From positions 1 to 64,000 of IMG/VR virus record IMGVR_UViG_3300008110_000030: a stretch of DNA of 64,000 nt; one strand, given 5' to 3'. The position numbers and the translations under genes are program-made. Position 1 is the first letter of the stretch. Each line of letters starts with the position of its first letter. Positions 3,556-18,662 of the stretch are shown here, one piece after another. Under the pieces are notes generated by a model, which saw only the letters and a program-made list of their open reading frames with translations, ran no database searches and had not been told where the DNA came from.

Positions 3556-3630
3556 TGGTAGGGGCACAGAGAATCGAACTCTGATTAATAGGTTAAAAGC
3601 CTACTACTTTAGCCGTTAAGTTATACCCCC
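3556..3630 (-). tRNA. tRNA-Lys(TTT)
   Basis: GTAGG-CTTTTAA-CCTAT, CCA. Confidence 0.93.
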
Positions 3631-3680
3631 GACATCTTATCACTCTTGTCACTTGTCATGACAGATCTCCTTTTTAAAAA

Positions 3681-3758
3681 TGGTCTGTGTGGTAGGATTT
3701 GAACCTACGGCCTCCTCGTTCCAAACAAGGCCGTCTACCGGGCTGACATTACACACAG
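3681..3758 (-). tRNA. tRNA-Pro(TGG)
   Basis: CCTTG-TTTGGAA-CGAGG, C1 start, CCA. Confidence 0.93.
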
Positions 3759-3783
3759 ATAAACTTTATTTCATAAATACAAG

Positions 3784-4026
3784 ATGACACGCTTATATGC
3801 ATATTACTGTATAAAGAAATTTATAATCTTCTTCCCTACACCAGTATTTTTAATACTGTCTTTGTGTAGTATTTTTTACTTTAAGTCGCCAATGTGCGGC
3901 GGCTTTTCATATGAAATGTCACTAATGTGGTTTCTTATGGCACTGGCACATTCAAAGCCTTGGATTGAATATATTGAAATCAAACGCTGTCCTAATGGAT
4001 GCGGTTGTGATTGCAATACTAACTAA
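3784..4026 (+). CDS. Small membrane protein with Cys-rich C-terminus
   Basis: Two hydrophobic segments, tail CPNGCGCDC; TAAATA at 3774-3779. Confidence 0.65.
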   Translation: MTRLYAYYCIKKFIIFFPTPVFLILSLCSIFYFKSPMCGGFSYEMSLMWFLMALAHSKPWIEYIEIKRCPNGCGCDCNTN

Positions 4027-4028
4027 CT

Positions 4029-4102
4029 TGGCAGAGGGTACTGGGATCGAACCAGTGATGACAGAGTCAAAGTCTGTAGTGTTACCGCTACACTAACCCC
4101 CA
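4029..4102 (-). tRNA. tRNA-Gln(TTG)
   Basis: ACAGA-CTTTGAC-TCTGT, GCCA end. Confidence 0.93.
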
Positions 4103-4111
4103 ACAAAAACT

Positions 4112-4187
4112 TGGTGCTACCTAGAGGAATCGAACCTCTTTCAACGGTGCTTCAAACCGCCGCTATGACCACATCAGCTAAAGTAGC
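4112..4187 (-). tRNA. tRNA-Phe(GAA)
   Basis: GCGGT-TTGAAGC-ACCGT, CCA. Confidence 0.9.
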
Positions 4188-4189
4188 AT

Positions 4190-4263
4190 TGGGGTGAAGT
4201 GGGGAATCGAACCCTCTCTTACTGTTTCACAGACAGCAGTGCAACCACTACACTAACAACACC
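4190..4263 (-). tRNA. tRNA-His(GTG)
   Basis: GCTGT-CTGTGAA-ACAGT; G-1:C73; two T-T mismatches in acceptor stem. Confidence 0.88.
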
Positions 4264-4269
4264 ATTGTT

Positions 4270-4346
4270 TGGCCGGCCCGGAGAGACTCGAACTCCCAAC
4301 CTCTAGTTTCGAAGACTAGCACTCTAATCCATTGAGTTACGGACCG
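4270..4346 (-). tRNA. tRNA-Arg(TCG)
   Basis: CTAGT-CTTCGAA-ACTAG, GCCA end. Confidence 0.92.
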
Positions 4347-4353
4347 ATAAATT

Positions 4354-4427
4354 TGGTACCTCCACCGGGTAACGATCCCAGGACTGCCGGTTATCAGCCG
4401 ACTGTTATTCCATTTAACTACAGAGGT
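4354..4427 (-). tRNA. tRNA-Ile(GAT) with atypical T-loop
   Basis: GTCGG-CTGATAA-CCGGC; T-loop ATCGTTA; CCA. Confidence 0.85.
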
Positions 4428-4503
4428 AAATTGCTAAGGGACACATTCTAATGTTGTTTGAGACTGAGCTGGGGGTCTGTGTTCAGCAAGTCTCCCATTT
4501 AAT

Positions 4504-4581
4504 TGGCTGTCCGACTAGGGATCGAACCTAGCTCATTCTTCGTTAACAGCGAAGCGCCTACACCATGCTTGCTCTCGGACA
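4504..4581 (-). tRNA. tRNA-Asn(GTT)
   Basis: CTTCG-CTGTTAA-CGAAG, GCCA end. Confidence 0.92.
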
Positions 4582-4588
4582 ATAAAAC

Positions 4589-4663
4589 TGGCGCCGTGGA
4601 CGGGGATCGAACCCGCCTTAATTGGATAGACAATCCAGTGCCCTCCCAGAGGACTACCACGGC
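4589..4663 (-). tRNA. tRNA-Asp(GTC)-like, atypical second copy
   Basis: TGGA-TTGTCTA-TCCA with T37; unusual D-loop; GCCA end. Confidence 0.75.
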
Positions 4664-4667
4664 ATAT

Positions 4668-4743
4668 TGGTATCGCGGACGGGAATCGAACCCGCCTAGT
4701 CACCTTGAAAGGGTGATGACCTAACCCAGAAGTCCACCGCGAT
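4668..4743 (-). tRNA. tRNA-Glu(TTC), second divergent copy
   Basis: TCACC-CTTTCAA-GGTGA, CCA. Confidence 0.9.
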
Positions 4744-5674: not shown

Positions 5675-6268
5675 CTAGTCGTCTAACAACAAATTGAAGT
5701 CAACTGGGATCGCTAGACGAAATCTGTCATAGTAAGGGGTTACCCAATGATACAGAAAGCAAGGAAAAACTAGTAGGTCACCTGAGTTTGGTTGGTACTC
5801 AATAGACCTAAACATTGGTTGAATTTCTTGTGGATAGCCTCTATTGGCATTCACTCTAGGGTCATCAAAAACTATTGCCCCACCGTCTGCTTGATTGTCT
5901 GCTAATAGATAAAATACTGCTGATATGTGTGATCCAGAATGATTGTGTGTATTCATGTAGTATCCCTTTGAATATCCGGCAATCCAGCCACGAATACTAC
6001 TACCAGGATAATCTTTAATATCTAGTTTAAAAACTTCTTTTAAATATCTTGAAAATGCTGGAATCACCACGTCGTCTTTAAATTTTTGGATAATTTTGGA
6101 ATCAGTATCAAAAATGTTTTCTTGTCGAATATCACTAGGTGGATTTTCTAAATCATACATTGAAAATAACTCATTAATAACATTGCCCAATAATTCTTGA
6201 TCTTTGATTGTATCTTTAATTACAGTCGTAGGCCAAAGAGAATTAATTCCTTCATTTATCAAGATCAA
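5675..6268 (-). CDS. 2OG-Fe(II) oxygenase (TIGR02466-like)
   Basis: HNHSGSHISAVFYL...DPR...HWVTPY...R. Confidence 0.8.
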   Translation of the reverse strand: MILINEGINSLWPTTVIKDTIKDQELLGNVINELFSMYDLENPPSDIRQENIFDTDSKIIQKFKDDVVIPAFSRYLKEVFKLDIKDYPGSSIRGWIAGYSKGYYMNTHNHSGSHISAVFYLLADNQADGGAIVFDDPRVNANRGYPQEIQPMFRSIEYQPNSGDLLVFPCFLYHWVTPYYDRFRLAIPVDFNLLLDD

Positions 6269-6653
6269 ACTCCTTTAAGAAATACATTTTTATATCTGGG
6301 ACAATGCCAATATCTTCATTAAAATTAAAACCCACTGCGTTCAGTATCTTGTTGTATGTATCCTTATCCTGCTCGTAGGGAACATAATATGGATCATTGC
6401 CATGTAGCAAATCAGGATCATTAAGTGATTCATAGAAATCTTCATTAAAATGCTGATTAAGCCAACGAGCATAGCATATGGCAACTACATAACTTTTAGC
6501 AGGGTAAACCCAGCCTAGTTCGTTGGTTGTAAAATACTTGATAGCATTTTCTAAGATATCATCTTTTATTTCAACCGTGTGTAAACTTAAATCATCATCG
6601 TGATCAGTATTAAGCCTGTGAAATATCTCTTGACGTATTTTCCATTCTTTCAT
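6252..6653 (-). CDS. Hypothetical protein in the radical SAM cluster
   Basis: Overlaps both neighbours; PAKSYVVAICYARWL motif. Confidence 0.75.
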   Translation of the reverse strand: MKEWKIRQEIFHRLNTDHDDDLSLHTVEIKDDILENAIKYFTTNELGWVYPAKSYVVAICYARWLNQHFNEDFYESLNDPDLLHGNDPYYVPYEQDKDTYNKILNAVGFNFNEDIGIVPDIKMYFLKEFDLDK

Positions 6654-7551
6654 AATATTCTAATAATCCTCTATAGCCGTTACAACTATTATTTAGATCC
6701 TTGACGTATCTATAATGCTCAGTTAGGCAGTGACCTTTAAACGGGCAACTTTGGCATATTGGGCTTAAACTTTTCTTTTCCTTTTCTGCCCATGTGATGT
6801 AATCGTCAAAGCTATCTAATTCTAAAAAATACTCGTTGTCATTAAGATCAAATTCTAAAACAGCAAATTTTCCGTTAGGAGTAATGTACACATGGTCATC
6901 ACTAAAACTGTTGTATATTTTATCTAAACTATCTTGTATATGATATTCATTAATAAACTCAAACTTTTTATCCACTGGACTCTCTAGCCATTTGATAACA
7001 AAGTTTTCAAAATCTCTGTGTGACACACTATGACAATTAGCTTGGTTGGTACTGTATGGTTTGATCTCAACACTGGTAATAGCAGTACACATGTTTAGTT
7101 CATTGATCATTTCATCAACATCAAGTCCAAGAACATCCTTACTGGCAAGTACCAATACTGATAGATTCTTTCTTGACTGCAACATATTATTGAATACCTG
7201 TCTACTCTTCTCCCTAGCAGTAAAATCATAACTAACACTTAGCGAGATGTCATCATCAAAAAACCAGTCGTGTATCATACTATAATTAGTGATAATGTTT
7301 ATGGCACCTGTATAATATTTTTTAATAACACGTTTGAGATCAAAAAACTCTTCACGTTTTAATACACCAATCTCTCCACCATACAAATCAACATGATCAA
7401 TTTTGGTATGTGTGACTATTTCTAACAGTTTTTCTTCTAGTTGTTTAGATGTAATGGTTTTTCTATCTTTAAGCTGATCTTTTGTCAAATAACAGAAGTT
7501 GCAACTAAAATTACAATAATAAGAAGGGTTAATGGATATGTTAATACTCAT
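6610..7551 (-). CDS. Radical SAM protein with C-terminal SPASM/twitch-type Cys cluster
   Basis: CNFSCNFC; LYGGEI; CQSCPFKGHC...C. Confidence 0.88.
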   Translation of the reverse strand: MSINISINPSYYCNFSCNFCYLTKDQLKDRKTITSKQLEEKLLEIVTHTKIDHVDLYGGEIGVLKREEFFDLKRVIKKYYTGAINIITNYSMIHDWFFDDDISLSVSYDFTAREKSRQVFNNMLQSRKNLSVLVLASKDVLGLDVDEMINELNMCTAITSVEIKPYSTNQANCHSVSHRDFENFVIKWLESPVDKKFEFINEYHIQDSLDKIYNSFSDDHVYITPNGKFAVLEFDLNDNEYFLELDSFDDYITWAEKEKKSLSPICQSCPFKGHCLTEHYRYVKDLNNSCNGYRGLLEYYERMENTSRDISQA

Positions 7552-8024
7552 GACAAATACTTTTTTAATTTTTTTAAACGGGACGTAGTTCGTTTAATGA
7601 AGTAACTTCTAACAAGCCAAGAATTATTGAAAGGAAAGGTGAATTGATTAGGATTATATACCCAAATCATAACACATTTATAATCTGTATATTGGCGAAG
7701 AAATAATTTATTAATCTCTTCAATGCCAAAATGATCAAAAGAGTGATCTATAGTTGATATAATTCTTAACTGACTTAGATCAAACATTAACTTTTTAGCT
7801 GAAGTTGATGAGTCCACTACCACAACAACATTGGCAACTGGATATTCACCGTGTGTCCCTTGACAACTGGAAATAGTCAAATATCCCAATTCTAATAATA
7901 CCTGCACTGTCTCTTTGATGCCGTCTTCTATTTCATCATAAAAATTAGCAAAATAAGGACTAACAACGATGTTGACACCATCGTCTATTTTGATTGATCC
8001 ATCACTATGTCGTTTATTGTACAT
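7548..8024 (-). CDS. Hypothetical protein, weak TYW3-like TISSCQG motif
   Basis: IEDGIKETVQVLLELGYLTISSCQG; translationally coupled to neighbours. Confidence 0.65.
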   Translation of the reverse strand: MYNKRHSDGSIKIDDGVNIVVSPYFANFYDEIEDGIKETVQVLLELGYLTISSCQGTHGEYPVANVVVVVDSSTSAKKLMFDLSQLRIISTIDHSFDHFGIEEINKLFLRQYTDYKCVMIWVYNPNQFTFPFNNSWLVRSYFIKRTTSRLKKLKKYLS

Positions 8025-9087
8025 CTTCGTTAATATACTCGGTGGCGAACATTTTATCAGTCATGCCATTGGCTTCTATAATAGAAGGCGCGAGTGCCTT
8101 CATGCGCACACAATGTGACTCTACTAGGTTAAAATCTTTTAGGTCTTTAATAGTTTTGCGACATCCATTACAAATTTCAAACATTGGACAAGTGTAGCAT
8201 GCCTGTTTTAAACTTTGTAATTCAGGCTGTACTTGTAAAGGGAAAACTTTTTTGCCTTTCATCTCTTCATCAAAATTGATTGAGTACAGTCTGTCATCAC
8301 CAAATGATCCGCAACTGTAATAATCCCCACTTGGCTGTAGTGTTCTAATACCAGCATCACATTTACGATTTTGTGGACATGACGTTGCACTGCCTCGTAA
8401 TCGTTGAACCATTTGTTTGGTATTGTATTCCCAATCAGTCAATCCAAGTTCCCAAATCTTAACATAAATTTCGTAAATCTTTGCCAACATATAAGGTTTG
8501 CCTTCTTGGCCCATTACTATGTTTTTAAATTTAACAGGAGGCCCGCTACTGAATGCGTAATTTAATTTACACTCAACATTCATTTTTTTAGCAAGTTCAA
8601 CGTTCTTAATTGCTAGGTGTTCATTTTCTTCTGAAATAACACTAATAAAATCTGGACGATAGCCAACGTGCTCTAACATAGCATCACTTACGGCCCAAAA
8701 GTCTTCCTCACTAAACTCTGTTAGGTCACCTTTTAGTCTTCCTCCACCATATTGAAAACTTGTAGTAATGCCCATGCGTTCGTGATTGAACAACTCTTTC
8801 CACTTGTTAGGGTTCTTATAAAATGGCCAAAGGTTAGATGTAAAACTTATAGTAGCACTAGACTCAATAGATTCTAAATGTTCAATAATTTTCCAATAAT
8901 AACTAGGATCCATCATTAATGGATCGCCACCATTAACAATGATAGTTTTTGTTTCTGGATATCGTTTTAAAAAGGTATAGACATATTCCAAATCTAATTC
9001 TAAAGATTTGTCTTCAGTAATATGAGTACTGCTACAGAACGTGCATTTAAAATTACATCGCTCTGTTGGTTTAATTATTAAATCCAT
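8014..9087 (-). CDS. Radical SAM/SPASM maturase (anaerobic sulfatase-maturase-like)
   Basis: IIKPTERCNFKCTFC; GGDPL; YYSCG; CYTCPMFEICNGC. Confidence 0.9.
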   Translation of the reverse strand: MDLIIKPTERCNFKCTFCSSTHITEDKSLELDLEYVYTFLKRYPETKTIIVNGGDPLMMDPSYYWKIIEHLESIESSATISFTSNLWPFYKNPNKWKELFNHERMGITTSFQYGGGRLKGDLTEFSEEDFWAVSDAMLEHVGYRPDFISVISEENEHLAIKNVELAKKMNVECKLNYAFSSGPPVKFKNIVMGQEGKPYMLAKIYEIYVKIWELGLTDWEYNTKQMVQRLRGSATSCPQNRKCDAGIRTLQPSGDYYSCGSFGDDRLYSINFDEEMKGKKVFPLQVQPELQSLKQACYTCPMFEICNGCRKTIKDLKDFNLVESHCVRMKALAPSIIEANGMTDKMFATEYINEDVQ

Positions 9088-9088
9088 G

Positions 9089-9382
9089 TTATTTTGACAA
9101 AGGACTGCCTACTTCTAAATTCCCATCGCCTCGTTCTAAACCATTTATTTGACGTATTACATCCATAATTAGATGTTTATACTTTTGTGTAGGACCTTCA
9201 AGTTCTTTAATTTTGGAATCCCAGTAGTCTCTTTTTTCTGGGATCTCCATATCTCGAACACAATTGTTAGCATACACCAAATATTCTTGACAATATATTT
9301 CACGTTGTGCTTCGTACTTTTCTTTTAAAGAAACAAGCTCTTCTGGACTAAGGGTGTCTAAATCTACTCCATGATCAATCAT
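9089..9382 (-). CDS. Hypothetical coiled-coil protein
   Basis: ORF packed within the operon. Confidence 0.65.
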   Translation of the reverse strand: MIDHGVDLDTLSPEELVSLKEKYEAQREIYCQEYLVYANNCVRDMEIPEKRDYWDSKIKELEGPTQKYKHLIMDVIRQINGLERGDGNLEVGSPLSK

Positions 9383-10995
9383 GTTATTCTCCTAAATAAT
9401 TCTGTGTATATTTCTAAATGATTTCTTTCAATAAACTCTGAAATAACTTCATTTCTTTCTCTACCGTTAATTCTCTTAATATTTCTAGCAGTTGTCTTAC
9501 TATTTAAAATATCATAGATGTCATCATATATTATTTTAAATCCGTTAAGTCCTGTAGAAATATCCCAACACATTTTGGTAAATTTCACTACATCAATATG
9601 TGCTTCAACTGCGTCATAATATTTGCCAATAAAGATATTACCTGCTATATTCATAAAAAACATCTCGCAAGCATCATCTATTGAATAAGAATAACAGTGT
9701 GAAATAGTTTTAAAGTGACTCTGACGATTAGAGTATAGCTCTCCCACTTTTACTTCCAACTCGTCAACATTATCAGTATACACGTTTACTAACTCAATGT
9801 CATATAATTTACAATAATCTGGATCATTGGCTGCACTATCTGGTAACACCATATAATCATAGCGCCAAGTTCCATTGTGTGCTTCTAATGTATAGATAAT
9901 TTCCCATTCGGCATAAAAATCTTCTAAGGTACTGCCAGGCATTCCTCGGATCAGTTCTAAAAAAGTTTTGTAACTGTATTTGTCACATTGTGTTTTGATG
10001 TGCTTACCTAACGCAATCTTGTCAGCAACTGACAAGTCTGTTCTCTTGGCCACTTTCATGGCTTCATCACTAATGCTTTGTATTCCAACATTTGGAATCA
10101 ACACTGAGCGTTGAGATTCATAGGGTTTGACTACATCAAACAATCTGTCAATTAGACGTATACGTTTTTTTAAATCTTTAGTTTTTGCTAGACTAGAATC
10201 AACAATGGCTACTCCATTTTCTTTTGCAAATTTTAATATATTAATGTCTCTGTCTTCAAACACACCAAAATTAGCATCAGCACAAACTACTTCTTTGTAT
10301 CCTGCTTGAGACAATGCTAGTAAATCATCATGTACCACTTCAACATCTTTTTTAATAATTTTTGTACCAATGCCGCCACCCCACTCACAAAATACACATG
10401 CAAATGGACAACCACGTGTGGTCTCGATTATAACATAAGGACGCATGTCATTGTCTTCTGCATATTTTTTAAGTTTTGATAGATAATCAAAATTTTGTCT
10501 GTATGCAGATGTCTTGGGAAATACCCAAGGCTTCTTTTTATAACTTCTTACTTCAAAACTAATATCTTCAATAACAGGCTTTTGATTATTTTTAAACCAG
10601 CTGTCAATGAAATCTTCCATAAACAGTTCGCCTGGACATGTAACCTTGCAAAAATAATCATACATTGGTCGTTTGTGTATTTCTTTCTCGCCAAGATGAG
10701 GACCACCAACTACAGTTATTGTTTTTGGGCTAATTTTTTTAACATACGTTGCAAGTTCATCTACTATATGATAATTCCAAATGTAAGAACTAAACATAAT
10801 GACATCAGCAGTTTTCACTTCTTCATAGATATCTTGAATAGTCTTGTATTTGTTGAATTTATATGGTGGTTCCATCCATTCAACTTGATCTTTATGTTGG
10901 CCCACTTCATCATAGTATGTTTTCATAAACATCCATGTAGCAGGATTTGACATTGAAGAATCAATTTGCGGAGGATTCACATAAGCAATACGCAT
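9379..10995 (-). CDS. Cobalamin-binding-domain radical SAM protein (class B type)
   Basis: FSSYIWN and VVGGPH (B12-binding domain); ETTRGCPFACVFCEWG; GIQS; GMPG. Confidence 0.88.
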   Translation of the reverse strand: MRIAYVNPPQIDSSMSNPATWMFMKTYYDEVGQHKDQVEWMEPPYKFNKYKTIQDIYEEVKTADVIMFSSYIWNYHIVDELATYVKKISPKTITVVGGPHLGEKEIHKRPMYDYFCKVTCPGELFMEDFIDSWFKNNQKPVIEDISFEVRSYKKKPWVFPKTSAYRQNFDYLSKLKKYAEDNDMRPYVIIETTRGCPFACVFCEWGGGIGTKIIKKDVEVVHDDLLALSQAGYKEVVCADANFGVFEDRDINILKFAKENGVAIVDSSLAKTKDLKKRIRLIDRLFDVVKPYESQRSVLIPNVGIQSISDEAMKVAKRTDLSVADKIALGKHIKTQCDKYSYKTFLELIRGMPGSTLEDFYAEWEIIYTLEAHNGTWRYDYMVLPDSAANDPDYCKLYDIELVNVYTDNVDELEVKVGELYSNRQSHFKTISHCYSYSIDDACEMFFMNIAGNIFIGKYYDAVEAHIDVVKFTKMCWDISTGLNGFKIIYDDIYDILNSKTTARNIKRINGRERNEVISEFIERNHLEIYTELFRRIT

Positions 10996-11606
10996 TACGA
11001 GTCTCTTACAGTTTTATCTAATACTATATTGTCGCCTAAATATAAATCAATTGGCATAGCAATACGCAGTCTAGATGTGTACCCTTGGACATGATGAAAA
11101 GTGTAGCTGGGAAATATTAGATAATCTCCTGTGCTTGGCATGTGAATCTCAGTATTAAAAAACTTTTGAAAATGATCATCATAGCCTCTATGACTGTTTC
11201 CTCTAGGATCAGTAAACACTATCTCTCCGCCTTGGGCATTATTCTCTGCCATTAGATAATATACTGATCCAATTTGGGATCCGCTATGGCTGTGAGATAC
11301 CATGCCTAGTCCATCTTTGTAACTGGCAATCCAGCTTCTTAGTCTATAGTTAGGATAGTTTTCAAGTGATGTTTCATACACCTTATTCAAATATTCTTCA
11401 AAGTTAGGTATAACAACTTCTTCCCTAAATTTAGTGATAGTTTTATCACTATCATAAATCATATCAACCCAGCCAAGATCGTTTGGGCCTACGTTCAAAT
11501 CATACGTTGAAATAATTTTATCTGCCAAGTCGTTTATTAACGTAGCATTGTCAACATTGCCTACTTGTATAAATGTAGGCCAACAAATGTTTAGGCCCTT
11601 GTTCAT
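10995..11606 (-). CDS. 2OG-Fe(II) oxygenase (TIGR02466-like)
   Basis: HSHSGSQIGSVYYL...DPR...HHV...R. Confidence 0.8.
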   Translation of the reverse strand: MNKGLNICWPTFIQVGNVDNATLINDLADKIISTYDLNVGPNDLGWVDMIYDSDKTITKFREEVVIPNFEEYLNKVYETSLENYPNYRLRSWIASYKDGLGMVSHSHSGSQIGSVYYLMAENNAQGGEIVFTDPRGNSHRGYDDHFQKFFNTEIHMPSTGDYLIFPSYTFHHVQGYTSRLRIAMPIDLYLGDNIVLDKTVRDS

Positions 11607-13234
11607 TTTATTCTTCCAAATAGTTCATTCATTATGAGCAGTTTGTTACTTGCAACCCATCGTGGAATAGCTTCAGTTCTAACTACCCCATTTATAGTGT
11701 TAATATTTCTAGCTGGGGTGTCTGGATTCAGTATATCTTTTACTTCAGCATATATCTCATCAAAGCCATCTACTGTTTTAAGAATTTCCCAACAGTGTTT
11801 GGCAAACTGTGAAACTGTTACTGAATCTTTAAAAAGATCATACATCTCACGTATCAAATTATTACCTGCAAAATTCATAAAAAACATTTCAGCGACGTCT
11901 TCTCTTGAAAAAGAATAGCTACTAGCAACTGTCTTATAGAATGTTCTACGATTTTTAAATAATCCGCCAGTGTTGGCAATGTCTTGTTCATCTACATTAT
12001 CAGTGTAGACATCGACTAATTCAATAGCATAAATTTCTTGATAAACTGGATCGCTGATCTCACTATCAGGTAATGCCATTAAGTCATACCGCCAACTAGA
12101 CCATGCGCCTAAATCATAAAATAGTTCCCACTCGGCATAAAAATCTTCTAAGGTACTCCCAGGCATGGCCATAATCAGTTCCATGCCTGGATGGTAATCA
12201 TATTTGGCGCACAAGTCACGCATGTACTTGCCTAGTTTAATTTTGTCTGATACTTTCATATCAGTCCGCTTGGCCACTTTCATAGCTTCATCACTAATAC
12301 TTTGTATACTAATGTTAGGAACTATGGCAGCTCTATCTTTTCGTCCAAAAGGCTGTATGATTTCAAAGAAGCTATCAACTAGTCTTTTTCTTCTTTCGTA
12401 ATCTTTTGTTTTAACTTGGCTTATATCAATAAAGGTTAGTCCTGCGTCCTTGGCAAACTTTAGAAGTCCTAAATCACGTTCTTCAAAAACCCCAAAATTA
12501 GCGTCAGCACAGATTGCTTCAGTAAACCCTGCTTCTACAATAGCAACACAATCTCGTTGTGCCCACTCTACTTCTTTTTTAATAATCTTGCCACCAATAC
12601 CACCACCCCACTCACAGTAGGTACAACTAAACGGACAGCCTCTGGTAGTTTCAATAACCATCATCAGTTCCATTTCATTTTCTATACCATAGGCACTGAT
12701 CTTTTTTAGATAGTCTAAATTTTCTTCATACGCACTTGCTAGAGGAAACTCCCAACGCTGTTGTTTAGTAGAGCGCACTTCGTAAGTTATATCACTTGCA
12801 TCAAGTTTATTTTCAATAAACAGATCTAGAACGTCCTTAACAAAGAACTCTCCTGGAAACATAGGACGTAATATATAATCGTACATACTACGTTTGATCC
12901 ACAGTGCAGGATCCTTTGCCCCAATCATTGGACCGCCCAACAAATTTATTACAGACGGGTTCTGTTGTTTAGCGTATTGTGCTATTTGATCAACTAGGTC
13001 ATAATTCCAAACATAACTGCTGAACATTATGATATCAGCATCTTTTATCAGTTCATATATTTCTTCAATGCTTTGGTATTCGTTGTACTTGTAAGGAGGC
13101 TCTAACCACTCTACTTGATCAGAGTATTTTCCATTATGTTGGTAGAAACTCTTGCATAGCATCCATGTGACTGGGTTGATTAAACTCCAGTCGGCATGTG
13201 GCGGATTGATAAACGCTATTTTGATTCTTTTCAT
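11603..13234 (-). CDS. Cobalamin-binding-domain radical SAM protein, paralog of 9379
   Basis: FSSYVWN, LLGGPM, ETTRGCPFSCTYCEWG. Confidence 0.88.
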   Translation of the reverse strand: MKRIKIAFINPPHADWSLINPVTWMLCKSFYQHNGKYSDQVEWLEPPYKYNEYQSIEEIYELIKDADIIMFSSYVWNYDLVDQIAQYAKQQNPSVINLLGGPMIGAKDPALWIKRSMYDYILRPMFPGEFFVKDVLDLFIENKLDASDITYEVRSTKQQRWEFPLASAYEENLDYLKKISAYGIENEMELMMVIETTRGCPFSCTYCEWGGGIGGKIIKKEVEWAQRDCVAIVEAGFTEAICADANFGVFEERDLGLLKFAKDAGLTFIDISQVKTKDYERRKRLVDSFFEIIQPFGRKDRAAIVPNISIQSISDEAMKVAKRTDMKVSDKIKLGKYMRDLCAKYDYHPGMELIMAMPGSTLEDFYAEWELFYDLGAWSSWRYDLMALPDSEISDPVYQEIYAIELVDVYTDNVDEQDIANTGGLFKNRRTFYKTVASSYSFSREDVAEMFFMNFAGNNLIREMYDLFKDSVTVSQFAKHCWEILKTVDGFDEIYAEVKDILNPDTPARNINTINGVVRTEAIPRWVASNKLLIMNELFGRIK

Positions 13235-13244: not shown

Positions 13245-13273
13245 ATTATACAACATAAAGTTAACAATTACAA
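13245..13273 (-). promoter_or_regulatory. Internal sigma70-like promoter before the B12 radical SAM pair
   Basis: TTGTAA-17 nt-TATAAT with TG in the spacer. Confidence 0.5.
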
Positions 13274-13783
13274 GCCTTCTACATTATAAGTGAAACTGGC
13301 AAGTCTTCTTGTGATTTTGCTTTTACTGGCTCTGTGAAAAAAGCCAGGAGTTTGATTTAACAACATCAAGTCACCCTTTTTAGGATAGTACGTGTCAATA
13401 TTGCCTTCCCCAGGCCACTTAAATTGCACTTCACCTCCAGTTGCAGGATGCTGATCATCAAAGTAAAATAAGAAGAAGATATTACCACCTTCAAATCCAT
13501 CGTTGTGCCAAATACTGCTGTCAGCATCTACGCCTTCAGCAATAACGTAATTCATAAAAGTATTCTTTGGAAATGCCTGATTAATATATTTTTCAGTTAT
13601 ATATACCTTGGCTGCTTCCATTTGCAACATCACTTCTTTAGGTAAGTCGTCTTTAAAATTATCACGTAATCGTTCTTCATGATAGTGGAATTCTACACTA
13701 TCAATATCAATCATGTTGGCTAATTCTTCTTCTCTAAAATAAGCATACCCTTTGGTAAGTAAATCATTTTTCCAATCTAACAT
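13268..13783 (-). CDS. 2OG-Fe(II) oxygenase (prolyl-hydroxylase-like)
   Basis: WHND...GGE...FHRA...R. Confidence 0.75.
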   Translation of the reverse strand: MLDWKNDLLTKGYAYFREEELANMIDIDSVEFHYHEERLRDNFKDDLPKEVMLQMEAAKVYITEKYINQAFPKNTFMNYVIAEGVDADSSIWHNDGFEGGNIFFLFYFDDQHPATGGEVQFKWPGEGNIDTYYPKKGDLMLLNQTPGFFHRASKSKITRRLASFTYNVEGL

Positions 13784-13784: not shown

Positions 13785-14807
13785 TTATTTCTCCAGTTTC
13801 ATTTGTACGTATTTAAACGACTTCTTAAAAACACATTCATCTAAATCTCTAGTTAATTCTTTATAATCACTGCTAATGAAACAACTGAACCCACATTTTT
13901 GATAAAATTCGCAAGTAAAGCAGTTGCGTTCTTTCATAAAGTTTTGAATAATAACTGTACCCTCTAAATTAGATGTGACGTTATTTTTCATCAACACACT
14001 TCCTGAGCACCCTTTAGGTGAAGTGTTATCGTACATAATAGTAAAACTACTACCACGTGTACAAGCCATCTTGTTATTAGGAGCAGTACCTAAGAATGAT
14101 TCTACGTTCATAGTCTCAGGATACTTATCAATCAATATTTTATAAAATTCGTATAACTCTGATTCTTTTGGCATCATTACTTTAAGAGCATTGTGTCCAG
14201 GTAATAAATGATCCCATGTCATAGTAAAATTATTATACAAATAATCGTGGTAGTCGTCACCCTTTAAAAGATTGGCAATATTTTGTTTAGTGATTACTAA
14301 ACTGATAAGTTTAACATAGGGTTTAAACAGTTCAATATTTTGTTTAAATATTTCAAATTGTACAGGATTAAATCTACCAGCTAGATCATAACTAACGCTC
14401 ATGGTCAAGTCGTATTTTTGACAAAACTGTATGACTTGGTCCATTCTGTCATTAACTAAATTTGTAACAAAGTTAAAAATTAAAACTTTATCCTTAGGAA
14501 CCTTATTGCGAACTTGCTCTATAAATTCGCTGTAATACTCAATGAACCCTTGATCAATTAGCTCGTCTTGAAATAGTTCTCCACCCATAATGTGAAGATG
14601 AAATTCTTTATTTTTGCTATTTGCAATCCAATTACATATTGGATCAACTTTCTTTAGAATTTCCTCTCGACTCAACCCAACACGACTATTGTGATCCTGT
14701 GGACAGAATACACAACTCATGTTACAGTGTTCAAAGAAATTAACCACAATTTCAGACCAGTCAATTACTTTGTCCTTTATTACGCCGTAAAAAAATTCAT
14801 CACTCAT
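13785..14807 (-). CDS. Radical SAM protein with C-terminal Cys cluster
   Basis: CNMSCVFC; MGGELF; CFTCEFYQKCGFSC. Confidence 0.87.
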   Translation of the reverse strand: MSDEFFYGVIKDKVIDWSEIVVNFFEHCNMSCVFCPQDHNSRVGLSREEILKKVDPICNWIANSKNKEFHLHIMGGELFQDELIDQGFIEYYSEFIEQVRNKVPKDKVLIFNFVTNLVNDRMDQVIQFCQKYDLTMSVSYDLAGRFNPVQFEIFKQNIELFKPYVKLISLVITKQNIANLLKGDDYHDYLYNNFTMTWDHLLPGHNALKVMMPKESELYEFYKILIDKYPETMNVESFLGTAPNNKMACTRGSSFTIMYDNTSPKGCSGSVLMKNNVTSNLEGTVIIQNFMKERNCFTCEFYQKCGFSCFISSDYKELTRDLDECVFKKSFKYVQMKLEK

Positions 14808-15946
14808 GCGAACACCATTTGTTTTAATCTAGGATCGTTATTATTTTTTAACTCATAAACAAGTTGAAGAATATAATTGTTCCACTTTTGTACGTGTGTT
14901 AGTATATCAAATACAATACTAACATTGTCTTTTTCAAAATCTTTCTTTAGTATGCTGTTTATTTGTTCAGAAGTCATGTTGTCACGATTTTGGATCAGTG
15001 ATCTTAAGGTATCAAAAACAAAATGAGCATGGTTACTTTCAAAATAGTCTTCATCTAGCAGTCTTATTTTGTCATCGATCTGAATATCCTTGAACCAAAA
15101 TTCTTGTAGAAATTTTCCAAGTTCTAATATTTCGTCAATGTGTGCTAAAAAATAAGCACTATCCCTAGTTATAAATTTTAATTCATTATCAAACATCCAA
15201 TATAACTTTGGATGAGCTCTAAGTTTTTCCCTCCAACAATCGTCGTCCCAAGCGATATCTAATTTAAATGCTTCTTTGACATTTGCTTGCATGAAGTACT
15301 TGATAAAATAAAAGTACCATTCACTGACTTCCATTGCTAGTGCTTTTGACAGGACATAGATATATTTGTCTTTAAACACTTCAATATGACTTTCGTCATT
15401 GAAGAAGTTTGCAAGATGCCATTCAATACTAAAGCCTTCAATATGTTGTTTGACCCATTGTTGACGTACTATGTTATCACTCCACGGAGTTAACTGATTA
15501 AATAGCTCAATGAAATCTTTTTTGTTTAGAAACTCTATATCAAGTATGCTAGTCTTATTAAAATCCATGAAGCTACTGTTTAATACTATAGCAGGGAAAT
15601 GTAATTTTGACCTTTGCACTGATGCATTATAACAACAAAATGCCAAGTTAGCATCCATGTTAGGGAATATTGTCTTGATCCAATTTATAAAGACAATGTT
15701 GAATGCATCCATATCAACATAAAAGTTGAGTTTACTTTCATGTTCTAAACTGCATAGCAGTGAATGCCAATCTTTGTAAGCTCCGTTTACTCCCACTAAA
15801 TCTGTATAAGTCGTTGCTTGGTGCTTAATTGGATTTAGTGTAGACTTTTGCGCAACATTGGGGTTTTTACTAATAATGATTCTTTTTTTAGAATTATTAA
15901 CTAGATAGTCTGGGGAAACATATACCTTATTGAACAGATGTAACAT
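14804..15946 (-). CDS. Orphan protein, MLHLF-family paralog 1
   Basis: N-terminus MLHLFNKVYV shared with 16488 and 17478. Confidence 0.75.
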   Translation of the reverse strand: MLHLFNKVYVSPDYLVNNSKKRIIISKNPNVAQKSTLNPIKHQATTYTDLVGVNGAYKDWHSLLCSLEHESKLNFYVDMDAFNIVFINWIKTIFPNMDANLAFCCYNASVQRSKLHFPAIVLNSSFMDFNKTSILDIEFLNKKDFIELFNQLTPWSDNIVRQQWVKQHIEGFSIEWHLANFFNDESHIEVFKDKYIYVLSKALAMEVSEWYFYFIKYFMQANVKEAFKLDIAWDDDCWREKLRAHPKLYWMFDNELKFITRDSAYFLAHIDEILELGKFLQEFWFKDIQIDDKIRLLDEDYFESNHAHFVFDTLRSLIQNRDNMTSEQINSILKKDFEKDNVSIVFDILTHVQKWNNYILQLVYELKNNNDPRLKQMVFA

Positions 15947-16491
15947 TATGTGATCCTATTATATTGGTCTACATAAGATTCGTAACCATCAGTGTTAATA
16001 TACAGATCAAAAGGAAGACATAGTCTTGTTCCTGGACCTTGGTGTGTCAAAACTTCGTGTCCAAGATAACTTGGAAAAATTAAAAGATCGCCTGGCTCTG
16101 GGTGTATTTCAACTGGACTAAACCAGCTTTGATTAATATTGATCTGTTGTGTGGGCGGATGTAAAACAATCTCGCCTCCAGATGCCGTTTGGAGATAAAA
16201 TATCCCTGACAACCAGCCCCAAGGATGCCAATGCCATCGAGCACTATTGCCTGGTTCAATATACAACATGTTGCCGTTTAATTTTACTTCTGCATTTTTT
16301 GGCAACTCTTCCTTCCAGGTTTCAGAAACAGCACTCATGATTTTCTCATAAAGTTTTTCAGTAAACTCATCAGTGTCTTTGAACCATTTATTTTCATGCT
16401 GGCACACAACATTACTTTGAAACATAAGATTTACTAAATCTTCATTCCCGTGTTCATAGTGTATTTTGGTTGGCCAAATTTCTTTTTTCAT
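15946..16491 (-). CDS. 2OG-Fe(II) oxygenase (TIGR02466-like)
   Basis: WHWHP..LSGIFYL...FPSYLGHEV...R. Confidence 0.8.
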   Translation of the reverse strand: MKKEIWPTKIHYEHGNEDLVNLMFQSNVVCQHENKWFKDTDEFTEKLYEKIMSAVSETWKEELPKNAEVKLNGNMLYIEPGNSARWHWHPWGWLSGIFYLQTASGGEIVLHPPTQQININQSWFSPVEIHPEPGDLLIFPSYLGHEVLTHQGPGTRLCLPFDLYINTDGYESYVDQYNRIT

Positions 16492-17471
16492 TTTCTCAAT
16501 ACGTAATGCTGTAGGCTTACGTTTCCTAAGATAGTATTTACTGATATATCTTGATAGGTTTCTAAAATATGGTCCAAGAAGTAGACATTAAAATATTTTC
16601 TACCAAAATCTGAAAATGATGTTTGTCCAAGATTATGCAAATTGTATTGGATAATCGCATTTAAGTCTTCATCACTAATACTATCTTTTCTAATAATTGG
16701 TATCAAATTTAATTTAGTAACACACGGGTTCTCAGAATTAGAATGCACCCAACTGCCTAAAAAGTTAGAGCAATTTTCTACAAAATTAGATGAAAATTTC
16801 TCGTCATCAAAACATTGCCAGCTGAAAGACCCAGTTTTGAATACTTCAAAAAACCATGCTAGATTTGGATCACATATTAAATTCTCTAAATTTTTATATG
16901 TGTATTTTTTTGTTTTCAACAATTGTTGCAATTTTGTCTTAGCAGAATTAAGTAAAATTGTGTCACGTGTTTCTTCTATAAAGTTTTGCATATCCTTTTT
17001 TACAAGTTTATGCAATACGTTTTTTAATTCTTCTTTAAATGATTGGTTATAAAGATAGGAAGTTAATAAAAATTCAAAACTGATATCTTCTAAAAAATCA
17101 CAAGTATCCAATTTTTCTACACTGTCATATATGATGTTGTAGTCATCTTCTTTTATTACAGTGTCTTTTAATACATCAACACTCTTATCTAAACCAATTA
17201 ATTGATTTTCTTTTAATAGATGACATTTTAGAATCGTATAACATGATTCTGAAGTGGGAAATGCAAAAACTGACTTGTGCCATTGTGCTACAAGTTTAAT
17301 GAACAAAGTTTTGTCAGCAACAATGACAAGTTTTTTGTTATTCTTGATACAATTTAATTTAGCAATTAGTAAAAGTTCAAGCAGATCGATATCTTCAGTT
17401 GCAGTAATACTATTGAAATCTGAAGATGGATATTTAAAATCTATATAAACTTTCTTAAAAAGATGTAGCAT
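16488..17471 (-). CDS. Orphan protein, MLHLF-family paralog 2
   Basis: N-terminus MLHLFKKVYI. Confidence 0.75.
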   Translation of the reverse strand: MLHLFKKVYIDFKYPSSDFNSITATEDIDLLELLLIAKLNCIKNNKKLVIVADKTLFIKLVAQWHKSVFAFPTSESCYTILKCHLLKENQLIGLDKSVDVLKDTVIKEDDYNIIYDSVEKLDTCDFLEDISFEFLLTSYLYNQSFKEELKNVLHKLVKKDMQNFIEETRDTILLNSAKTKLQQLLKTKKYTYKNLENLICDPNLAWFFEVFKTGSFSWQCFDDEKFSSNFVENCSNFLGSWVHSNSENPCVTKLNLIPIIRKDSISDEDLNAIIQYNLHNLGQTSFSDFGRKYFNVYFLDHILETYQDISVNTILGNVSLQHYVLRK

Positions 17472-17477: not shown

Positions 17478-18662
17478 TTAAATCGGGAGTACGAATCCAT
17501 TTAACTTATTTTTTTCATCTTTCACTACACATCGGGTAATATAGTTTATTAGTGGCATATTAAATTTAGTGAGATCAATTCCCCCGAATTGACAGGCTGG
17601 ATCAGCGATTGGTCCAGATAGTTGTGTTTGTATTACAAAATCAAGATCACTATCTGTAAATTGATTTGAAATAACAATATCAAACATTCTGAATATATCA
17701 TTTTTCCAAATGGTAGCTCTAGGTCCTAGGTTTTCAATGTCGTCAAATAACCATAAACGTTTCCAATGGAATTCTAAATGAGATTTTAATTTTTGGAACT
17801 GGCTCGCAGTCAATTTTTCAAATTGAAATTCTGAATAAGAAGTGTGTGCAACTGGCACACCTTGAACTCCCCAAAGCGTACTATCAAACCAGATGTCAAA
17901 TGCCGGGTCCAAAGCTATTGTGTCTAGATTACCTAGATCATATGAGCCAGTGGGGGTACACTCTTCGGCCATACTGTTGTTGCTCAATAATTGACGCAAC
18001 ATAAATGCCTTTGCCTCATACACATATTGTTGAGCACCAAACTTCAATGTAGTTTTTAAAATATTTTTAATGATATCTTTATGTGTACCATTGACAAAGT
18101 AGGAAGCTAATAGATATTCAAAACTTATTGTAGGTGTAATTAAAGAAACAAACCCATCATAAACACCAGTTTCAACAACAGTGGAGTTATACTGTGCGTG
18201 AAACTCTTGTGGGCTCACATAGTGTTCAATTTGTGTTTGTCTATACGGGCGTGTGAAACTGTTATTGACACTTTGGGTAATACCAAACATTCTAGTCATG
18301 AACATGGAACTTGACACAAGACCATATGCATCATCTGGTGTGGCATTAGGCAAAATTATTTTGATCCACTTGGATGTCAGTTTTAAGTAAGTGTCTCTGT
18401 CACAATAGATAACAATTCTAGAATTGTAGCTGTCAGCTTTTCGATTGACATCATTTAAAAATAATAAAAAATTAGCATATTTTTTATCTGGACCAATCAA
18501 TTCGTCTAAGTTTCTAGCAAATGCGATAAGATCAGAATGTACCACTCCAGCCAGATCATGTAATAGATCAACACCATTTTCTTGTGAAATCACATACCTA
18601 TTGACGTTTAGATCGATTGAATCGTCTAAATCTAAATAAACTCTTTTAAACAAGTGGAACAC
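17478..18662 (-). CDS. Orphan protein, MLHLF-family paralog 3
   Basis: GTG start at 18662 with AAGGAG RBS gives MFHLFKRVYL. Confidence 0.75.
   Translation of the reverse strand: MFHLFKRVYLDLDDSIDLNVNRYVISQENGVDLLHDLAGVVHSDLIAFARNLDELIGPDKKYANFLLFLNDVNRKADSYNSRIVIYCDRDTYLKLTSKWIKIILPNATPDDAYGLVSSSMFMTRMFGITQSVNNSFTRPYRQTQIEHYVSPQEFHAQYNSTVVETGVYDGFVSLITPTISFEYLLASYFVNGTHKDIIKNILKTTLKFGAQQYVYEAKAFMLRQLLSNNSMAEECTPTGSYDLGNLDTIALDPAFDIWFDSTLWGVQGVPVAHTSYSEFQFEKLTASQFQKLKSHLEFHWKRLWLFDDIENLGPRATIWKNDIFRMFDIVISNQFTDSDLDFVIQTQLSGPIADPACQFGGIDLTKFNMPLINYITRCVVKDEKNKLNGFVLPI

Follow-up and report, generated by a model that had tools for sequence, protein, structure and literature searches.

Two diverged cobalamin-type radical SAM paralogs in a conserved, apparently undescribed phage gene cassette for the putative remodelling of a Cys/His-rich protein tail

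Why should a large freshwater phage carry, next to each other, two genes for radical SAM (rSAM) enzymes of the vitamin-B12 type, and on what might these enzymes act? We addressed this question for a stretch of 64,000 nucleotides (positions 1 to 64,000 of the 214.6 kb IMG/VR record IMGVR_UViG_3300008110_000030; hereafter the window). A first-pass annotation, made from the sequence alone, had described a tandem pair of cobalamin-dependent-type rSAM paralogs of 538 and 543 amino acids (here named A538 and B543; Table 1) that share near-identical blocks, also at the DNA level, are each preceded by a 2OG oxygenase, and possess their own sigma70-like promoter. It had interpreted this arrangement as a duplication and specialisation for two methylation sites or substrates by a phage that draws on host cobalamin. 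Our analysis confirmed the observation, while the interpretation built upon it was supported only in part.

Two full-length paralogs of the TokK/CysS kind

Both open reading frames were found exactly as described. A BLASTP comparison showed that A538 and B543 are paralogs over their full length (280/542 identical residues; 52%), and the two blocks of near-identity are present in both proteins. At the DNA level, the genes are 63% identical overall, with islands of 41/45 and a longest exact run of 26 nt that lies in the MPGSTLEDFYAEWE block. Codon identity at identical residues is 53%, so the DNA islands are no more than constraint would give.

Several lines of evidence place both proteins among the class-B (cobalamin-type) rSAM enzymes. 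The Pfam B12-binding model (PF02310) scores 34.6 bits for A538 (cut-off 32.1) and 26.8 bits, below the cut-off, for B543, while the Radical_SAM model is below its cut-off in both. The CX3CX2C cluster motif and every TokK/CysS-type cobalamin motif are retained in both proteins. Among solved structures, TokK is the best relative by sequence (4.5e-22), followed by CysS (5e-15), and the AF2 model of A538 (pLDDT 90.4) has TokK (7kdy) as its top fold match (E 8.6e-27; TMq 0.75), followed by CysS, TsrM and OxsB. The best NCBIfam match is the KedN5 family of methylcobalamin-dependent C-methyltransferases (6.8e-31 for A538; 1.2e-23 for B543). The TokK-defining residues are invariant in 39 family members: the S-x-Y-x-W loop, in which W73 corresponds to TokK Trp76 below the cobalt, the cluster cysteines, E-W205 (TokK Trp215), and D240-A-N242 (TokK Asp250-Ala-Asn252), which stands in place of GGE; the roles of these residues are taken from the literature (PMC9204698, PMC12846815). 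The phage proteins share with TokK, ThnK (carbapenem C6 alkylation) and CysS (cystobactamid), all iterative C-methylases, a three-domain build comprising an N-terminal Rossmann-like cobalamin domain, a radical SAM barrel and a C-terminal domain. However, identity over the structural alignment is only 16-18%, the phage proteins are about 100-140 residues shorter, and no NCBIfam model is met at its cut-off (107 bits against 700 for KedN5).

Both copies look active as judged from their sequences. All motifs are intact, both genes are under strong purifying selection (dN/dS is 0.060 for A538 and 0.026 for B543 when each is compared with the related locus L093), and neither copy has decayed more than the other. 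The clade-specific departures from the family consensus are few and symmetric (6 and 8 of 189 conserved columns). Specialisation is plausible, since each clade has its own fixed departures. Near-identical contigs of both genes occur in a freshwater metatranscriptome library; this RNA evidence rests on contigs of one library in which DNA carry-over cannot be excluded.

Table 1. Features of the minus-strand operon in the window (all on the minus strand unless stated)
Feature	Coordinates	Assignment	Evidence
g133 and g197	5675-6653	g133 (6252-6653), conserved unknown; g197 (5675-6268), PF13759 2OG oxygenase; end of the operon	g133: phrog_20737, 44-90% identical across loci including cultured phages
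g313	6610-7551	rSAM enzyme (phrog_1802 paralog)	Fer4_12 27.4 bits, above cut-off; phrog_1802 1.3e-33
g357	8014-9087	rSAM/SPASM-like enzyme, the most conserved gene of the cassette	PF04055 35 bits, above cut-off; DynA 1.7e-13; SPASM 25 bits, just under the cut-off of 27
g97	9089-9382	Small acidic protein following the B12 gene(s) in this sub-clade	No family match; 97% identical in L011, 72% in L010, 66% in L091, always just after the last B12 gene
A538	9379-10995	Cobalamin-type (class B) rSAM enzyme, accessory copy	Cluster cysteines C196/C200/C203
g203	10995-11606	PF13759 2OG-Fe(II) oxygenase travelling with A538	47.3 bits (cut-off 27), E 2.9e-12; phrog_81; 40% identical to g197; dN/dS 0.043
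B543	11603-13234	Cobalamin-type (class B) rSAM enzyme, resident copy	Cluster cysteines C200/C204/C207
Promoter-like site	13245-13273	In the only real intergenic gap of the operon	TTGTAA-17-TATAAT, 10 of 12
g171	13268-13783	Probable 2OG oxygenase-like protein upstream of B543	PF13640 20.3 bits (cut-off 27), E 1.1e-3; phrog_19592
g340	13785-14807	rSAM enzyme (phrog_1802 paralog)	phrog_1802 6.6e-34; weak HxsB/HxsC matches
g380 and g181	14804-16491	g380 (14804-15946), unknown; g181 (15946-16491), PF13759 2OG oxygenase	
g237	18646-19359	Conserved unknown protein that always follows g201	phrog_20767 2e-57; in nearly all loci, including RSL2 and Atu_ph07; no lead from the Protein Atlas
g201	19356-19961	Candidate substrate protein; invariant C-terminal core encoded at 19359-19406	No Pfam, NCBIfam or PHROG match
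g359	19963-21042	rSAM/SPASM enzyme, always directly upstream of the g201-type gene	SPASM (TIGR04085) 30.7 bits (cut-off 27); phrog_1802 7e-64
g152	21015-21473	Cupin/JmjC-like protein at the head of the conserved cassette	Cupin_2 4.2e-11; JmjC_2 1.2e-9; in most loci and in RSL2 and Atu_ph07
Promoter-like site	24068-24096	Best such site of the region, at the head of the operon	TTGACA-17-TATAAT, 12 of 12; divergent 11 of 12 site at 24139-24167 (plus strand)

An old two-copy state rather than a recent duplication

We then asked whether the pair arose through a recent tandem duplication of a 2OG-plus-rSAM module, with one copy redundant or on its way to loss. In favor of this reading, the genes are adjacent, lie on the same strand, share blocks at the DNA level, and each has an oxygenase-like gene upstream. 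However, these two oxygenases belong to different families and are not detectably related to each other (E 0.012): g203 is a clear PF13759 member, while g171 is only a weak PF13640 match, although an H-x-D ... H ... R pattern is visible. The g171 gene sits directly upstream of the B12 gene in only 4 of 51 related loci. The two copies are only 52% identical, whereas the nearest relative, the viral locus L011, is 85-97% identical in the other cassette genes and 87.5% in B543, yet it lacks A538 and g203 and has B543 followed directly by g97. Likewise, the related locus L010 has only B543 (79% identical). Of the 80 related viral loci fetched, 75 show one copy and none shows two. The gene order B-2OG-A-g97 recurs in L091, where A is 62% and B 82% identical, and is also found in L093-L095; g203 lies next to an A-type copy in each of these and is missing from L011 and L010. 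The two-copy state is hence old and has been gained or lost as a module, and we regard A538 and g203 as an accessory module kept in some lineages. Both copies are, furthermore, under strong purifying selection. The recent duplication of a 2OG-plus-rSAM module is contradicted by these data and is very unlikely.

The claim that the pair has its own promoter was likewise not supported as originally put forward. The consensus match in front of B543 exists, but such sites are at chance level in this AT-rich stretch (95 found against 81.8 +/- 9.6 expected). Its -10 part, the 9-mer TGTATAATA, is nevertheless invariant in the same gap of the four related loci L093, L011, L010 and L091, two of which are saturated at synonymous sites; the 8-mer is not enriched in the window. 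In contrast, the proposal that the phage draws on host cobalamin is a reasonable inference. Within the 214.6 kb record, which is only 61% complete, no B12-binding domain was found outside of the pair and no CobT or CobA/BtuR family match was detected.

A cassette with a candidate substrate protein

The pair is embedded in an operon of ~18 kb that encodes four rSAM/SPASM-like enzymes, four 2OG oxygenases and a cupin. The likely substrate is g201, a protein of ~200 amino acids whose relatives are about 30% identical overall but all end in C-H-x-S-C-H-x-x-C-H-x-x-R-x-R-R. In an alignment of 39 sequences, mean column identity is 35% and all 10 invariant columns lie in the last 16 residues. The motif ends an ORF in 77 of 92 sources and is present upstream in 50 of 51 loci that have the B12 gene and enough upstream sequence. 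The order g359-type rSAM, motif protein, g237 is kept both in phages and in Bdellovibrionota contigs. The best matches of g359 are the peptide maturases PapB, DarE, DynA and anSME, all far below their own cut-offs.

The same cassette is present in the cultured jumbo phages RSL2, RSF1, FLC6, S13 and Atu_ph07, where g357 is 57-62% identical, g359, g340, g313, g237, g133 and the cupin are all found, and the motif protein ends in the same core. The literature only lists these genes as accessory proteins of unknown role (PMC8066314, PMC11898562), and the system does not appear to have been described. The cultured phages have no B12-type rSAM enzyme, while the window has two, plus extra oxygenases; in Bdellovibrionota MAG contigs, the cassette occurs with the B12 enzyme.

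Since the nearest characterised relatives of the pair (TokK, CysS, KedN5) act on pantetheine- or carrier-tethered small molecules and not on peptides, and the peptide-methylase model TIGR03975 matches only weakly (2.4e-6), we considered that the cassette might make a small molecule. The B12 enzymes would then methylate a tethered or free intermediate, and g201 would be a scaffold that donates residues (as in PQQ, mycofactocin or pearlins) or an unrelated metal-binding protein. Consistent with this view, the operon in the window and in the related loci L011 and L013 also carries an ADH-like and a GFO/IDH/MocA-like oxidoreductase, and RSL2 has a gene annotated as dihydrofolate reductase in the same slot. 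However, the ADH and GFO genes are absent from most loci, no carrier protein, phosphopantetheinyl transferase, ligase or glycosyltransferase belongs to the conserved core, the four core rSAM enzymes match peptide maturases best, and the one universally co-located non-enzyme is a protein whose only invariant part is a 16-residue tail. We therefore consider this alternative unlikely.

Two known protein maturation systems invite comparison. Proteusin-type RiPP pathways such as that for polytheonamide combine B12 rSAM C-methylases (PoyB/PoyC), an rSAM epimerase (PoyD) and a 2OG hydroxylase (PoyI) around one ribosomal substrate with a long, protein-like leader. The phage cassette has a corresponding mix of enzyme classes around its putative substrate, with several rSAM enzymes, B12-type enzymes in more than one copy and a 'leader' that is likewise long and protein-like, but there is no detectable homology beyond the superfamily level, no nitrile-hydratase-like leader, and the core is a 16-residue Cys/His/Ser/Arg tail instead of a long hydrophobic peptide; the system is also phage-borne. 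In the HXS anti-phage system (PMC13128918), HxsA, with His-Xaa-Ser repeats, is matured by the rSAM enzymes HxsB/HxsC with HxsD; as proposed for the phage cassette, a protein and not a short peptide, with tandem H-x-S units and basic residues, is thus matured by more than one rSAM/SPASM enzyme. The cassette rSAM enzymes give weak HxsB/HxsC matches, but with scores far below the equivalog cut-offs (about 25 bits against 268-370). Furthermore, the repeat is C-H-x-S x3 at the extreme C terminus with invariant Cys, there is no peptidoglycan-binding domain or signal peptide, additional B12 rSAM and 2OG enzymes are present, and the cassette is carried by phages rather than used against them.

Proposed role of the enzyme pair

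Our best reading, which we hold with no more than even confidence, is that A538 and B543 are functional cobalamin-dependent enzymes of the TokK/ThnK/CysS structural subclass, most likely C-methyltransferases, that serve as accessory tailoring enzymes of a phage-borne, RiPP-like protein maturation system. The analysis directly supports the paralogy, the motifs, the predicted fold, the purifying selection, the synteny and the conservation of the core, whereas cobalamin binding, methyl transfer, g201 as the substrate and the division of labour between the two copies are inferred. No RiPP recognition element and no protease were identified, and a complex prediction of A538 with the g201 tail gave no verdict. 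The g201 core does not differ between genomes with 0, 1 or 2 B12 enzymes, so nothing in the sequence points to the methylated site, and a Cys/His-rich tail could instead be a metal-binding tail. It is also possible, though we think it improbable, that the enzymes bind cobalamin but carry out another class-B reaction on the same peptide or protein, such as cyclisation, ring contraction, or thioether or C-C bond formation. Class B includes non-methylating members (OxsB is found in the fold list, BchE and HpnJ among the profile matches), and the Cys-, His- and Ser-rich core would suit cross-linking; however, the closest relatives by sequence and by fold are all methylases, the TokK-subclass residues that tune methylcobalamin chemistry are invariant, and four SPASM-type enzymes already cover cross-linking.

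In the mechanism that we envision, one SAM methylates cob(I)alamin, while a second is cleaved at the [4Fe-4S] cluster to the 5'-deoxyadenosyl radical, which abstracts a hydrogen atom from an unactivated carbon; the substrate radical then takes the methyl group from methylcobalamin. The SPASM enzymes would cross-link or otherwise alter Cys/His/Ser positions in the C-terminal tail (C-H-x-S)x3-R-G-R-R of g201, the oxygenases would hydroxylate it, and the B12 enzymes would methylate it. In this view, B543 is the resident copy of this phage lineage, while A538 and its own PF13759 oxygenase form an extra two-gene module in a variable tailoring slot between g340 and g357 that presumably adds a second methylation (another site or another round) together with a hydroxylation, with the cobalamin having to come from the host.

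Sequence and predicted enzyme class of the paired radical SAM proteins

The cassette under study is carried by a large tailed phage whose 214,617-bp IMG/VR record, of which the window is the first 64 kb, is rated 61% complete by CheckV. The phage carries 23 tRNA genes and a DnaK homologue; outside of the 64-kb window, its record encodes a family-B DNA polymerase, a portal, baseplate and tail-fibre proteins, and ORFs of 2,853 to 4,747 amino acids. Near-identical DNA occurs in lake and freshwater metagenomes from 14 studies. The genes of interest lie in a low-GC (32-36%), minus-strand operon of tightly packed and often overlapping genes that runs from about 23.7 kb down to 5.7 kb. In the following, genes of this operon are designated by the length of their products (e.g., g201).

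The first-pass annotation had described a tandem pair of cobalamin-type radical SAM paralogs (here A538 and B543) sharing near-identical blocks also at the DNA level, each preceded by a 2OG oxygenase gene, and this observation is confirmed by our analysis, although only one of the two upstream genes encodes a clear 2OG oxygenase. Both ORFs are real, their products align end to end with 52% identity, and the shared blocks are present in both of them. At the DNA level the two genes are 63% identical, with local islands and a longest exact run of 26 nt. We considered gene conversion as the source of these islands but rejected it, since codon identity at identical residues is only 53%; the DNA-level blocks therefore reflect constraint rather than recent conversion. 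The gene upstream of A538 (g203) encodes a clear PF13759 2OG oxygenase (47.3 bits; cut-off 27), while the gene upstream of B543 (g171) gives only a weak match to PF13640 (20.3 bits; cut-off 27), although an H-x-D motif, a distal His and an Arg are visible in its sequence. The two upstream proteins are not related to each other.

Table: Coordinates of the features discussed (window positions unless another locus is named)
Feature	Position	Strand	Description
A538	9379-10995	minus	538-aa predicted cobalamin-type radical SAM protein
B543	11603-13234	minus	543-aa predicted cobalamin-type radical SAM protein
Promoter-like site before B543	13273-13245	minus	10 of 12 consensus positions
Promoter-like site at the operon head	24096-24068	minus	12 of 12 consensus positions; strongest site
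Divergent promoter-like pair	24068-24167	both	12 of 12 on the minus and 11 of 12 on the plus strand, at the boundary where GC skew changes sign
g201	19356-19961	minus	Candidate substrate protein; C-terminal core encoded at 19359-19406
RSL2 ORF068	L009:3852-4412		Member of the g201 family (L009, RSL2 locus)
Atu_ph07 gp170	L008:7983-8873		Member of the g201 family (L008, Atu_ph07 locus)
Tandem motif-protein genes	L059:5577-7090		Two ORFs
Tandem motif-protein genes	L051:15151-16865
Tandem motif-protein genes	L110:14483-15671		Bdellovibrionota-labelled MAG contig
RSL2 ORF073	L009:8822-9358		Annotated as dihydrofolate reductase; in the slot that holds the B12 enzymes in the window
g158	7548-8024		Absent from L011; not shared with L093
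g327	16488-17471		Absent from L011; shared with L093 (95%)
ADH-like and GFO/IDH/MocA-like genes	21467-23265		Same operon, upstream of the cupin gene; ADH-like gene zinc-type, N-terminal domain only
A-type carrier	G000:C1:79722-80027		Fe-S assembly gene elsewhere in the record of this phage
NifU plus two IscA-type genes	L010:16012-17019		Directly after the cassette, followed by DNA ligase
NifU plus two IscA-type genes	L092:4818-5825		Directly after the cassette, followed by DNA ligase
tRNA array	206-4743	minus	20 tRNA genes just downstream of the cassette
Sigma70-like sites	5647-5619 and 5550-5522		11 of 12 each; between the cassette end and the tRNA array
Further tRNA genes	55819-59030		Three tRNA genes
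DnaK/Hsp70 homologue	39562-41451		Full length, phrog_22485; 65-68% identical to DnaK sequences in several phage-labelled records, 51-59% to those of huge metagenomic phages

Pfam searches detected a B12-binding domain and a radical SAM core in both proteins, but only the B12-binding domain of A538 (PF02310; 34.6 bits) exceeds its cut-off (32.1 bits); B543 scores 26.8 bits. The best NCBIfam match of both proteins is the KedN5 family of methylcobalamin-dependent C-methyltransferases (NF033712), with 107.2 and 83.2 bits against a cut-off of 700 bits. Hence, A538 and B543 are not members of this family, and the relationship is at the subclass level only. The best solved relatives by sequence are TokK and CysS, and an AF2 model of A538 (pLDDT 90.4) superposes as a whole chain on TokK with hydroxycobalamin (E 8.6e-27, TMq 0.75), followed by CysS, TsrM and OxsB. 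The CX3CX2C motif for the [4Fe-4S] cluster (C196/C200/C203 in A538, C200/C204/C207 in B543) is invariant in 39 relatives. Structural studies single out further residues for the TokK/ThnK/CysS subclass (PMC9204698; PMC12846815). Of the S-x-Y-x-W loop, whose Trp lies under the cobalt (TokK Trp76, CysS Trp75), S69/Y71/W73 of A538 align with TokK S72/Y74/W76, and Y71, W73 and N74 are invariant; likewise invariant are W205, the Trp one residue after the Cys loop (TokK Trp215), and D240-A241-N242, the triplet that replaces the GGE motif (TokK 250-252). We therefore file both proteins as class B radical SAM enzymes of that subclass. Methyl transfer is the most likely chemistry, but both this reaction, with its release of SAH plus 5'-deoxyadenosine, and cobalamin binding are inferred.

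As far as sequence can tell, both copies are alive. We compared them with a 96% identical relative seen in three other samples (L093-L095), and found dN/dS values of 0.026 for B543, 0.060 for A538 and 0.043 for the oxygenase gene located between them. Of 189 columns that are at least 85% conserved in 100 other family members, the A clade alone departs at six, the B clade alone at eight, and both depart at 14, nine of these with the same residue; divergence is thus symmetric and there is no decay. A freshwater metatranscriptome library holds one near-identical contig inside each gene, although these are contigs only, so that DNA carry-over cannot be excluded. Independent DNA runs bridge the A538-g203 and g203-B543 junctions, so the arrangement is not an assembly artefact.

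The first-pass annotation also assigned the pair its own sigma70-like promoter. The site in question exists and matches the consensus at 10 of 12 positions, but there are 95 such sites in the region against 82 +/- 10 expected. The 9-mer TGTATAATA in the 33-nt gap before B543 is nevertheless invariant in L093, in L011 (a 245-kb contig that is the closest relative), and in the more distant loci L010 and L091, the latter two being saturated at synonymous sites, while the −35-like hexamer is not conserved. A role of the 8-mer TGTATAAT as a recurring phage promoter motif was rejected, since it is not enriched in the window (8 matches against 5.4 +/- 2.4 expected). A functional element, possibly a −10-only internal promoter, is likely but unproven.

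Distribution and history of the two copies

B12-type radical SAM enzymes are essentially absent from cultured phage genomes. Searches of 50,697 phage records with the pair found nothing by blastn and only two weak matches, at 22% identity, by tblastn, and PHROGs has no family for either protein. Nevertheless, the family is common in environmental viral contigs: 179 IMG/VR stretches encode a relative, and 434 protein clusters score at E up to 1e-5. A second, distant group of B12-type radical SAM genes (about 30% identical) occurs in other large viral contigs (L075, L076, L081, L082, L084, L085) without the cassette.

In a midpoint-rooted FastTree topology of 122 family members, the A538 clade (7 rows) and the B543 clade (13 rows) are sisters. 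Of the 80 related IMG/VR loci fetched, 75 show a single copy of this family, five short or cut loci fall below the counting filter, and none shows two; one ENA contig (L006) also carries a second, 648-aa B12/rSAM gene on the other strand at its edge. The cassette genes of L011 other than the B12 gene are 85-97% identical to those of the window; this contig has B543 (87.5%) followed directly by the small gene g97, and it lacks A538, g203, g158 and g327. L010 (about 56-79% identical) also has only a B-type copy. The order B - PF13759 oxygenase - A - g97 recurs in L091, where the A copies are 62%, the B copies 82% and the oxygenases 47% identical. A-type proteins also occur as the single copy in other phages (L012, L092). 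The pair is therefore old, and A538 and its oxygenase behave as one accessory module that has been gained or lost and that evolves about twice as fast as the resident copy. An ancient duplication with losses and acquisition from a related phage both fit these data, while a recent tandem duplication of a two-gene module does not. A directly upstream oxygenase gene as a general feature of the family was likewise rejected, since it was seen in only four of 51 loci. The further differences in gene content between the window and its close relatives (g158, g327) show that the cassette is evidently a hotspot of small insertions and deletions.

The surrounding cassette and its candidate substrate

The operon holds four paralogous radical SAM enzymes of phrog_1802 (g359, g340, g357, g313), four 2OG oxygenase-type genes, a cupin gene, and genes for conserved unknown proteins. 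Pfam and NCBIfam searches at loose thresholds gave nothing usable for g380, g417, g327, g237, g201, g133, g158 and g97, and the Protein Atlas gave no usable lead for g201 and g237. g359 has a SPASM domain (TIGR04085; 30.7 bits, cut-off 27), and the best matches of g359 and g357 are peptide maturases (PapB, DarE, DynA, the anaerobic sulfatase maturase, HxsB/C), all far below their family cut-offs. The cassette is not an HXS defence system (HxsA-D) by these criteria: HxsB matches reach 24.8 and 24.5 bits against a cut-off of 370, HxsC matches 21.8-28 bits against 268, and g201 has no family match and carries three C-H-x-S units at its C terminus.

The g201 gene lies directly after g359, and genes of its family are always encoded right after such a SPASM-type radical SAM gene. 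Its relatives in 39 loci are 21-35% identical to it (85% in L011). In their alignment (mean identity 35%), all ten invariant columns fall in the last 16 residues, C-H-x-S-C-H-x-x-C-H-x-x-R-x-R-R, followed by the stop codon. An ORF ending in this motif is present in 77 of 92 sources examined; those without it are truncated loci or loci with only a distant (about 30% identical) B12 enzyme. Among loci with a family member at 35% identity or more and at least 9 kb of upstream sequence, 50 of 51 have the motif ORF upstream on the same strand, and the 51st has two copies elsewhere in the locus. Some loci (L045, L046, L059, L051, L110) carry two tandem genes for the motif protein, each with the same invariant tail, next to a single B12 enzyme. 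The family, whose members are about 190 aa long, numbers at least 302, none with a name or a Pfam domain. AF2 predicts for g201 a folded alpha/beta domain with a floppy tail (pLDDT 76). Foldseek searches of the PDB with this model found nothing at E up to 1e-3, a VIA-align comparison with 48,161 chains gave a best Z of 5.2, to designed proteins, and BFVD returned only uncharacterised phage proteins, including one from Atu_ph07. A variable body with an invariant terminal core, placed next to SPASM maturases, is the signature of a ribosomal substrate of post-translational modification, and g201 looks like the substrate of the whole cassette. A complex prediction of A538 (alignment A1) with residues 140-201 of g201 (the 39-locus alignment) gave a score of 0.02, which is evidence neither for nor against binding, and no RRE family match was found in the cassette.

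The cassette, including the motif protein, is present in the cultured jumbo phages RSL2/RSF1 and their Burkholderia relatives and in Atu_ph07, while g357 alone also matches Phosso and pPa_SNUABM_DT01. g357 is 57-62% identical across these records, and none of them has the B12 enzyme. Papers on these phages list the genes as accessory proteins of unknown role, and we found no paper on B12 radical SAM enzymes in jumbo phages, on SPASM enzymes in jumbo phages, or on the function of this cassette. Marine studies have noted radical SAM cassettes in the host-recognition cluster of pelagimyophages, and T4-like viral genomes with up to 12 radical SAM genes plus Fe-S assembly genes. Fe-S assembly genes also travel with the cassette studied here, lying right after it in relatives (L010, L092) and elsewhere in the genome in this phage.

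Unexpectedly, the cassette with the B12 enzyme (40-43% identical) also lies in eight GTDB contigs of MAGs labelled Bdellovibrionota (L102, L104, L105, L107, L108, L110, L111, L115). In five of the eight, the locus examined also shows the motif protein, with two copies in L110. In L102 and L108 the flanks are plainly bacterial, with genes for PilM, a phosphonate-binding protein, a KatG-type peroxidase, DctP, and a pilin-like protein with a Peptidase_S74 domain, and the portal protein of the window finds no homologue in those MAGs. The cassette is thus shared by large phages and predatory bacteria, and is found near pilus or fibre genes in the bacteria.

Inferred role of the B12 enzymes and of the cassette

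The slot between g340 and g357 holds different tailoring genes in different genomes: one B12 enzyme in most, an oxygenase-like gene plus one B12 enzyme in L010 and L011, two B12 enzymes and two oxygenase-type genes in the window, and the gene annotated as dihydrofolate reductase in RSL2. We read A538 and B543 as tailoring C-methylases acting on the g201 tail, or on an intermediate of it; the SPASM enzymes would do the core modification, the oxygenases would hydroxylate, and two B12 copies would give two sites or two rounds of methylation. While the paired genes themselves are confirmed, this step, including the modification of g201, is inference: the closest characterised relatives act on tethered small molecules, and the core sequence does not vary with B12 copy number. 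The ADH-like and GFO/IDH/MocA-like oxidoreductase genes, which are shared with L011, L013 and (the ADH-like gene, at its edge) L093 but absent from most other loci, could mean an extra, small-molecule-type branch.

The interpretation offered in the first-pass annotation, duplication and specialisation of the pair for two methylation sites or substrates with a draw on host cobalamin, is partly right. With regard to the cobalamin supply, we found no B12-binding domain outside of the pair and no CobT or CobA/BtuR family match in the incomplete (61%) record; if the enzymes bind cobalamin, the host must supply it. The pair is best seen as a lineage-specific tailoring layer of a conserved and, as far as we could find, undescribed phage (and predator) protein-maturation cassette.

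A more far-reaching reading, which we regard as doubtful on present evidence, is that the cassette represents an undescribed, widespread protein-maturation system shared by large phages (T4-like and phiKZ-related jumbo phages) and predatory Bdellovibrionota. It would turn the invariant C-terminal (C-H-x-S)x3-R-G-R-R tail of a dedicated protein of about 200 aa into a heavily cross-linked, hydroxylated and, in some lineages, C-methylated structure, which might be a metal-binding or redox-active 'warhead' used during entry into, or takeover of, Gram-negative cells. In this view, the B12 radical SAM pair would tie phage fitness to host cobalamin.

The pair points to a conserved multi-rSAM cassette that sits unannotated in well-known jumbo phages (RSL2, RSF1, FLC6, S13, Atu_ph07), and a concrete candidate substrate can now be named for it. 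If the tail of g201 is the substrate, this would be a phage-borne RiPP-like system with new enzymology, in which four SPASM-type enzymes, up to four oxygenases and one or two B12 methylases act on 16 residues. A phage function that needs cobalamin would link infection success to a scarce, traded vitamin in lakes and oceans, and the occurrence of the cassette in predatory bacteria hints at a role in invading Gram-negative cells.
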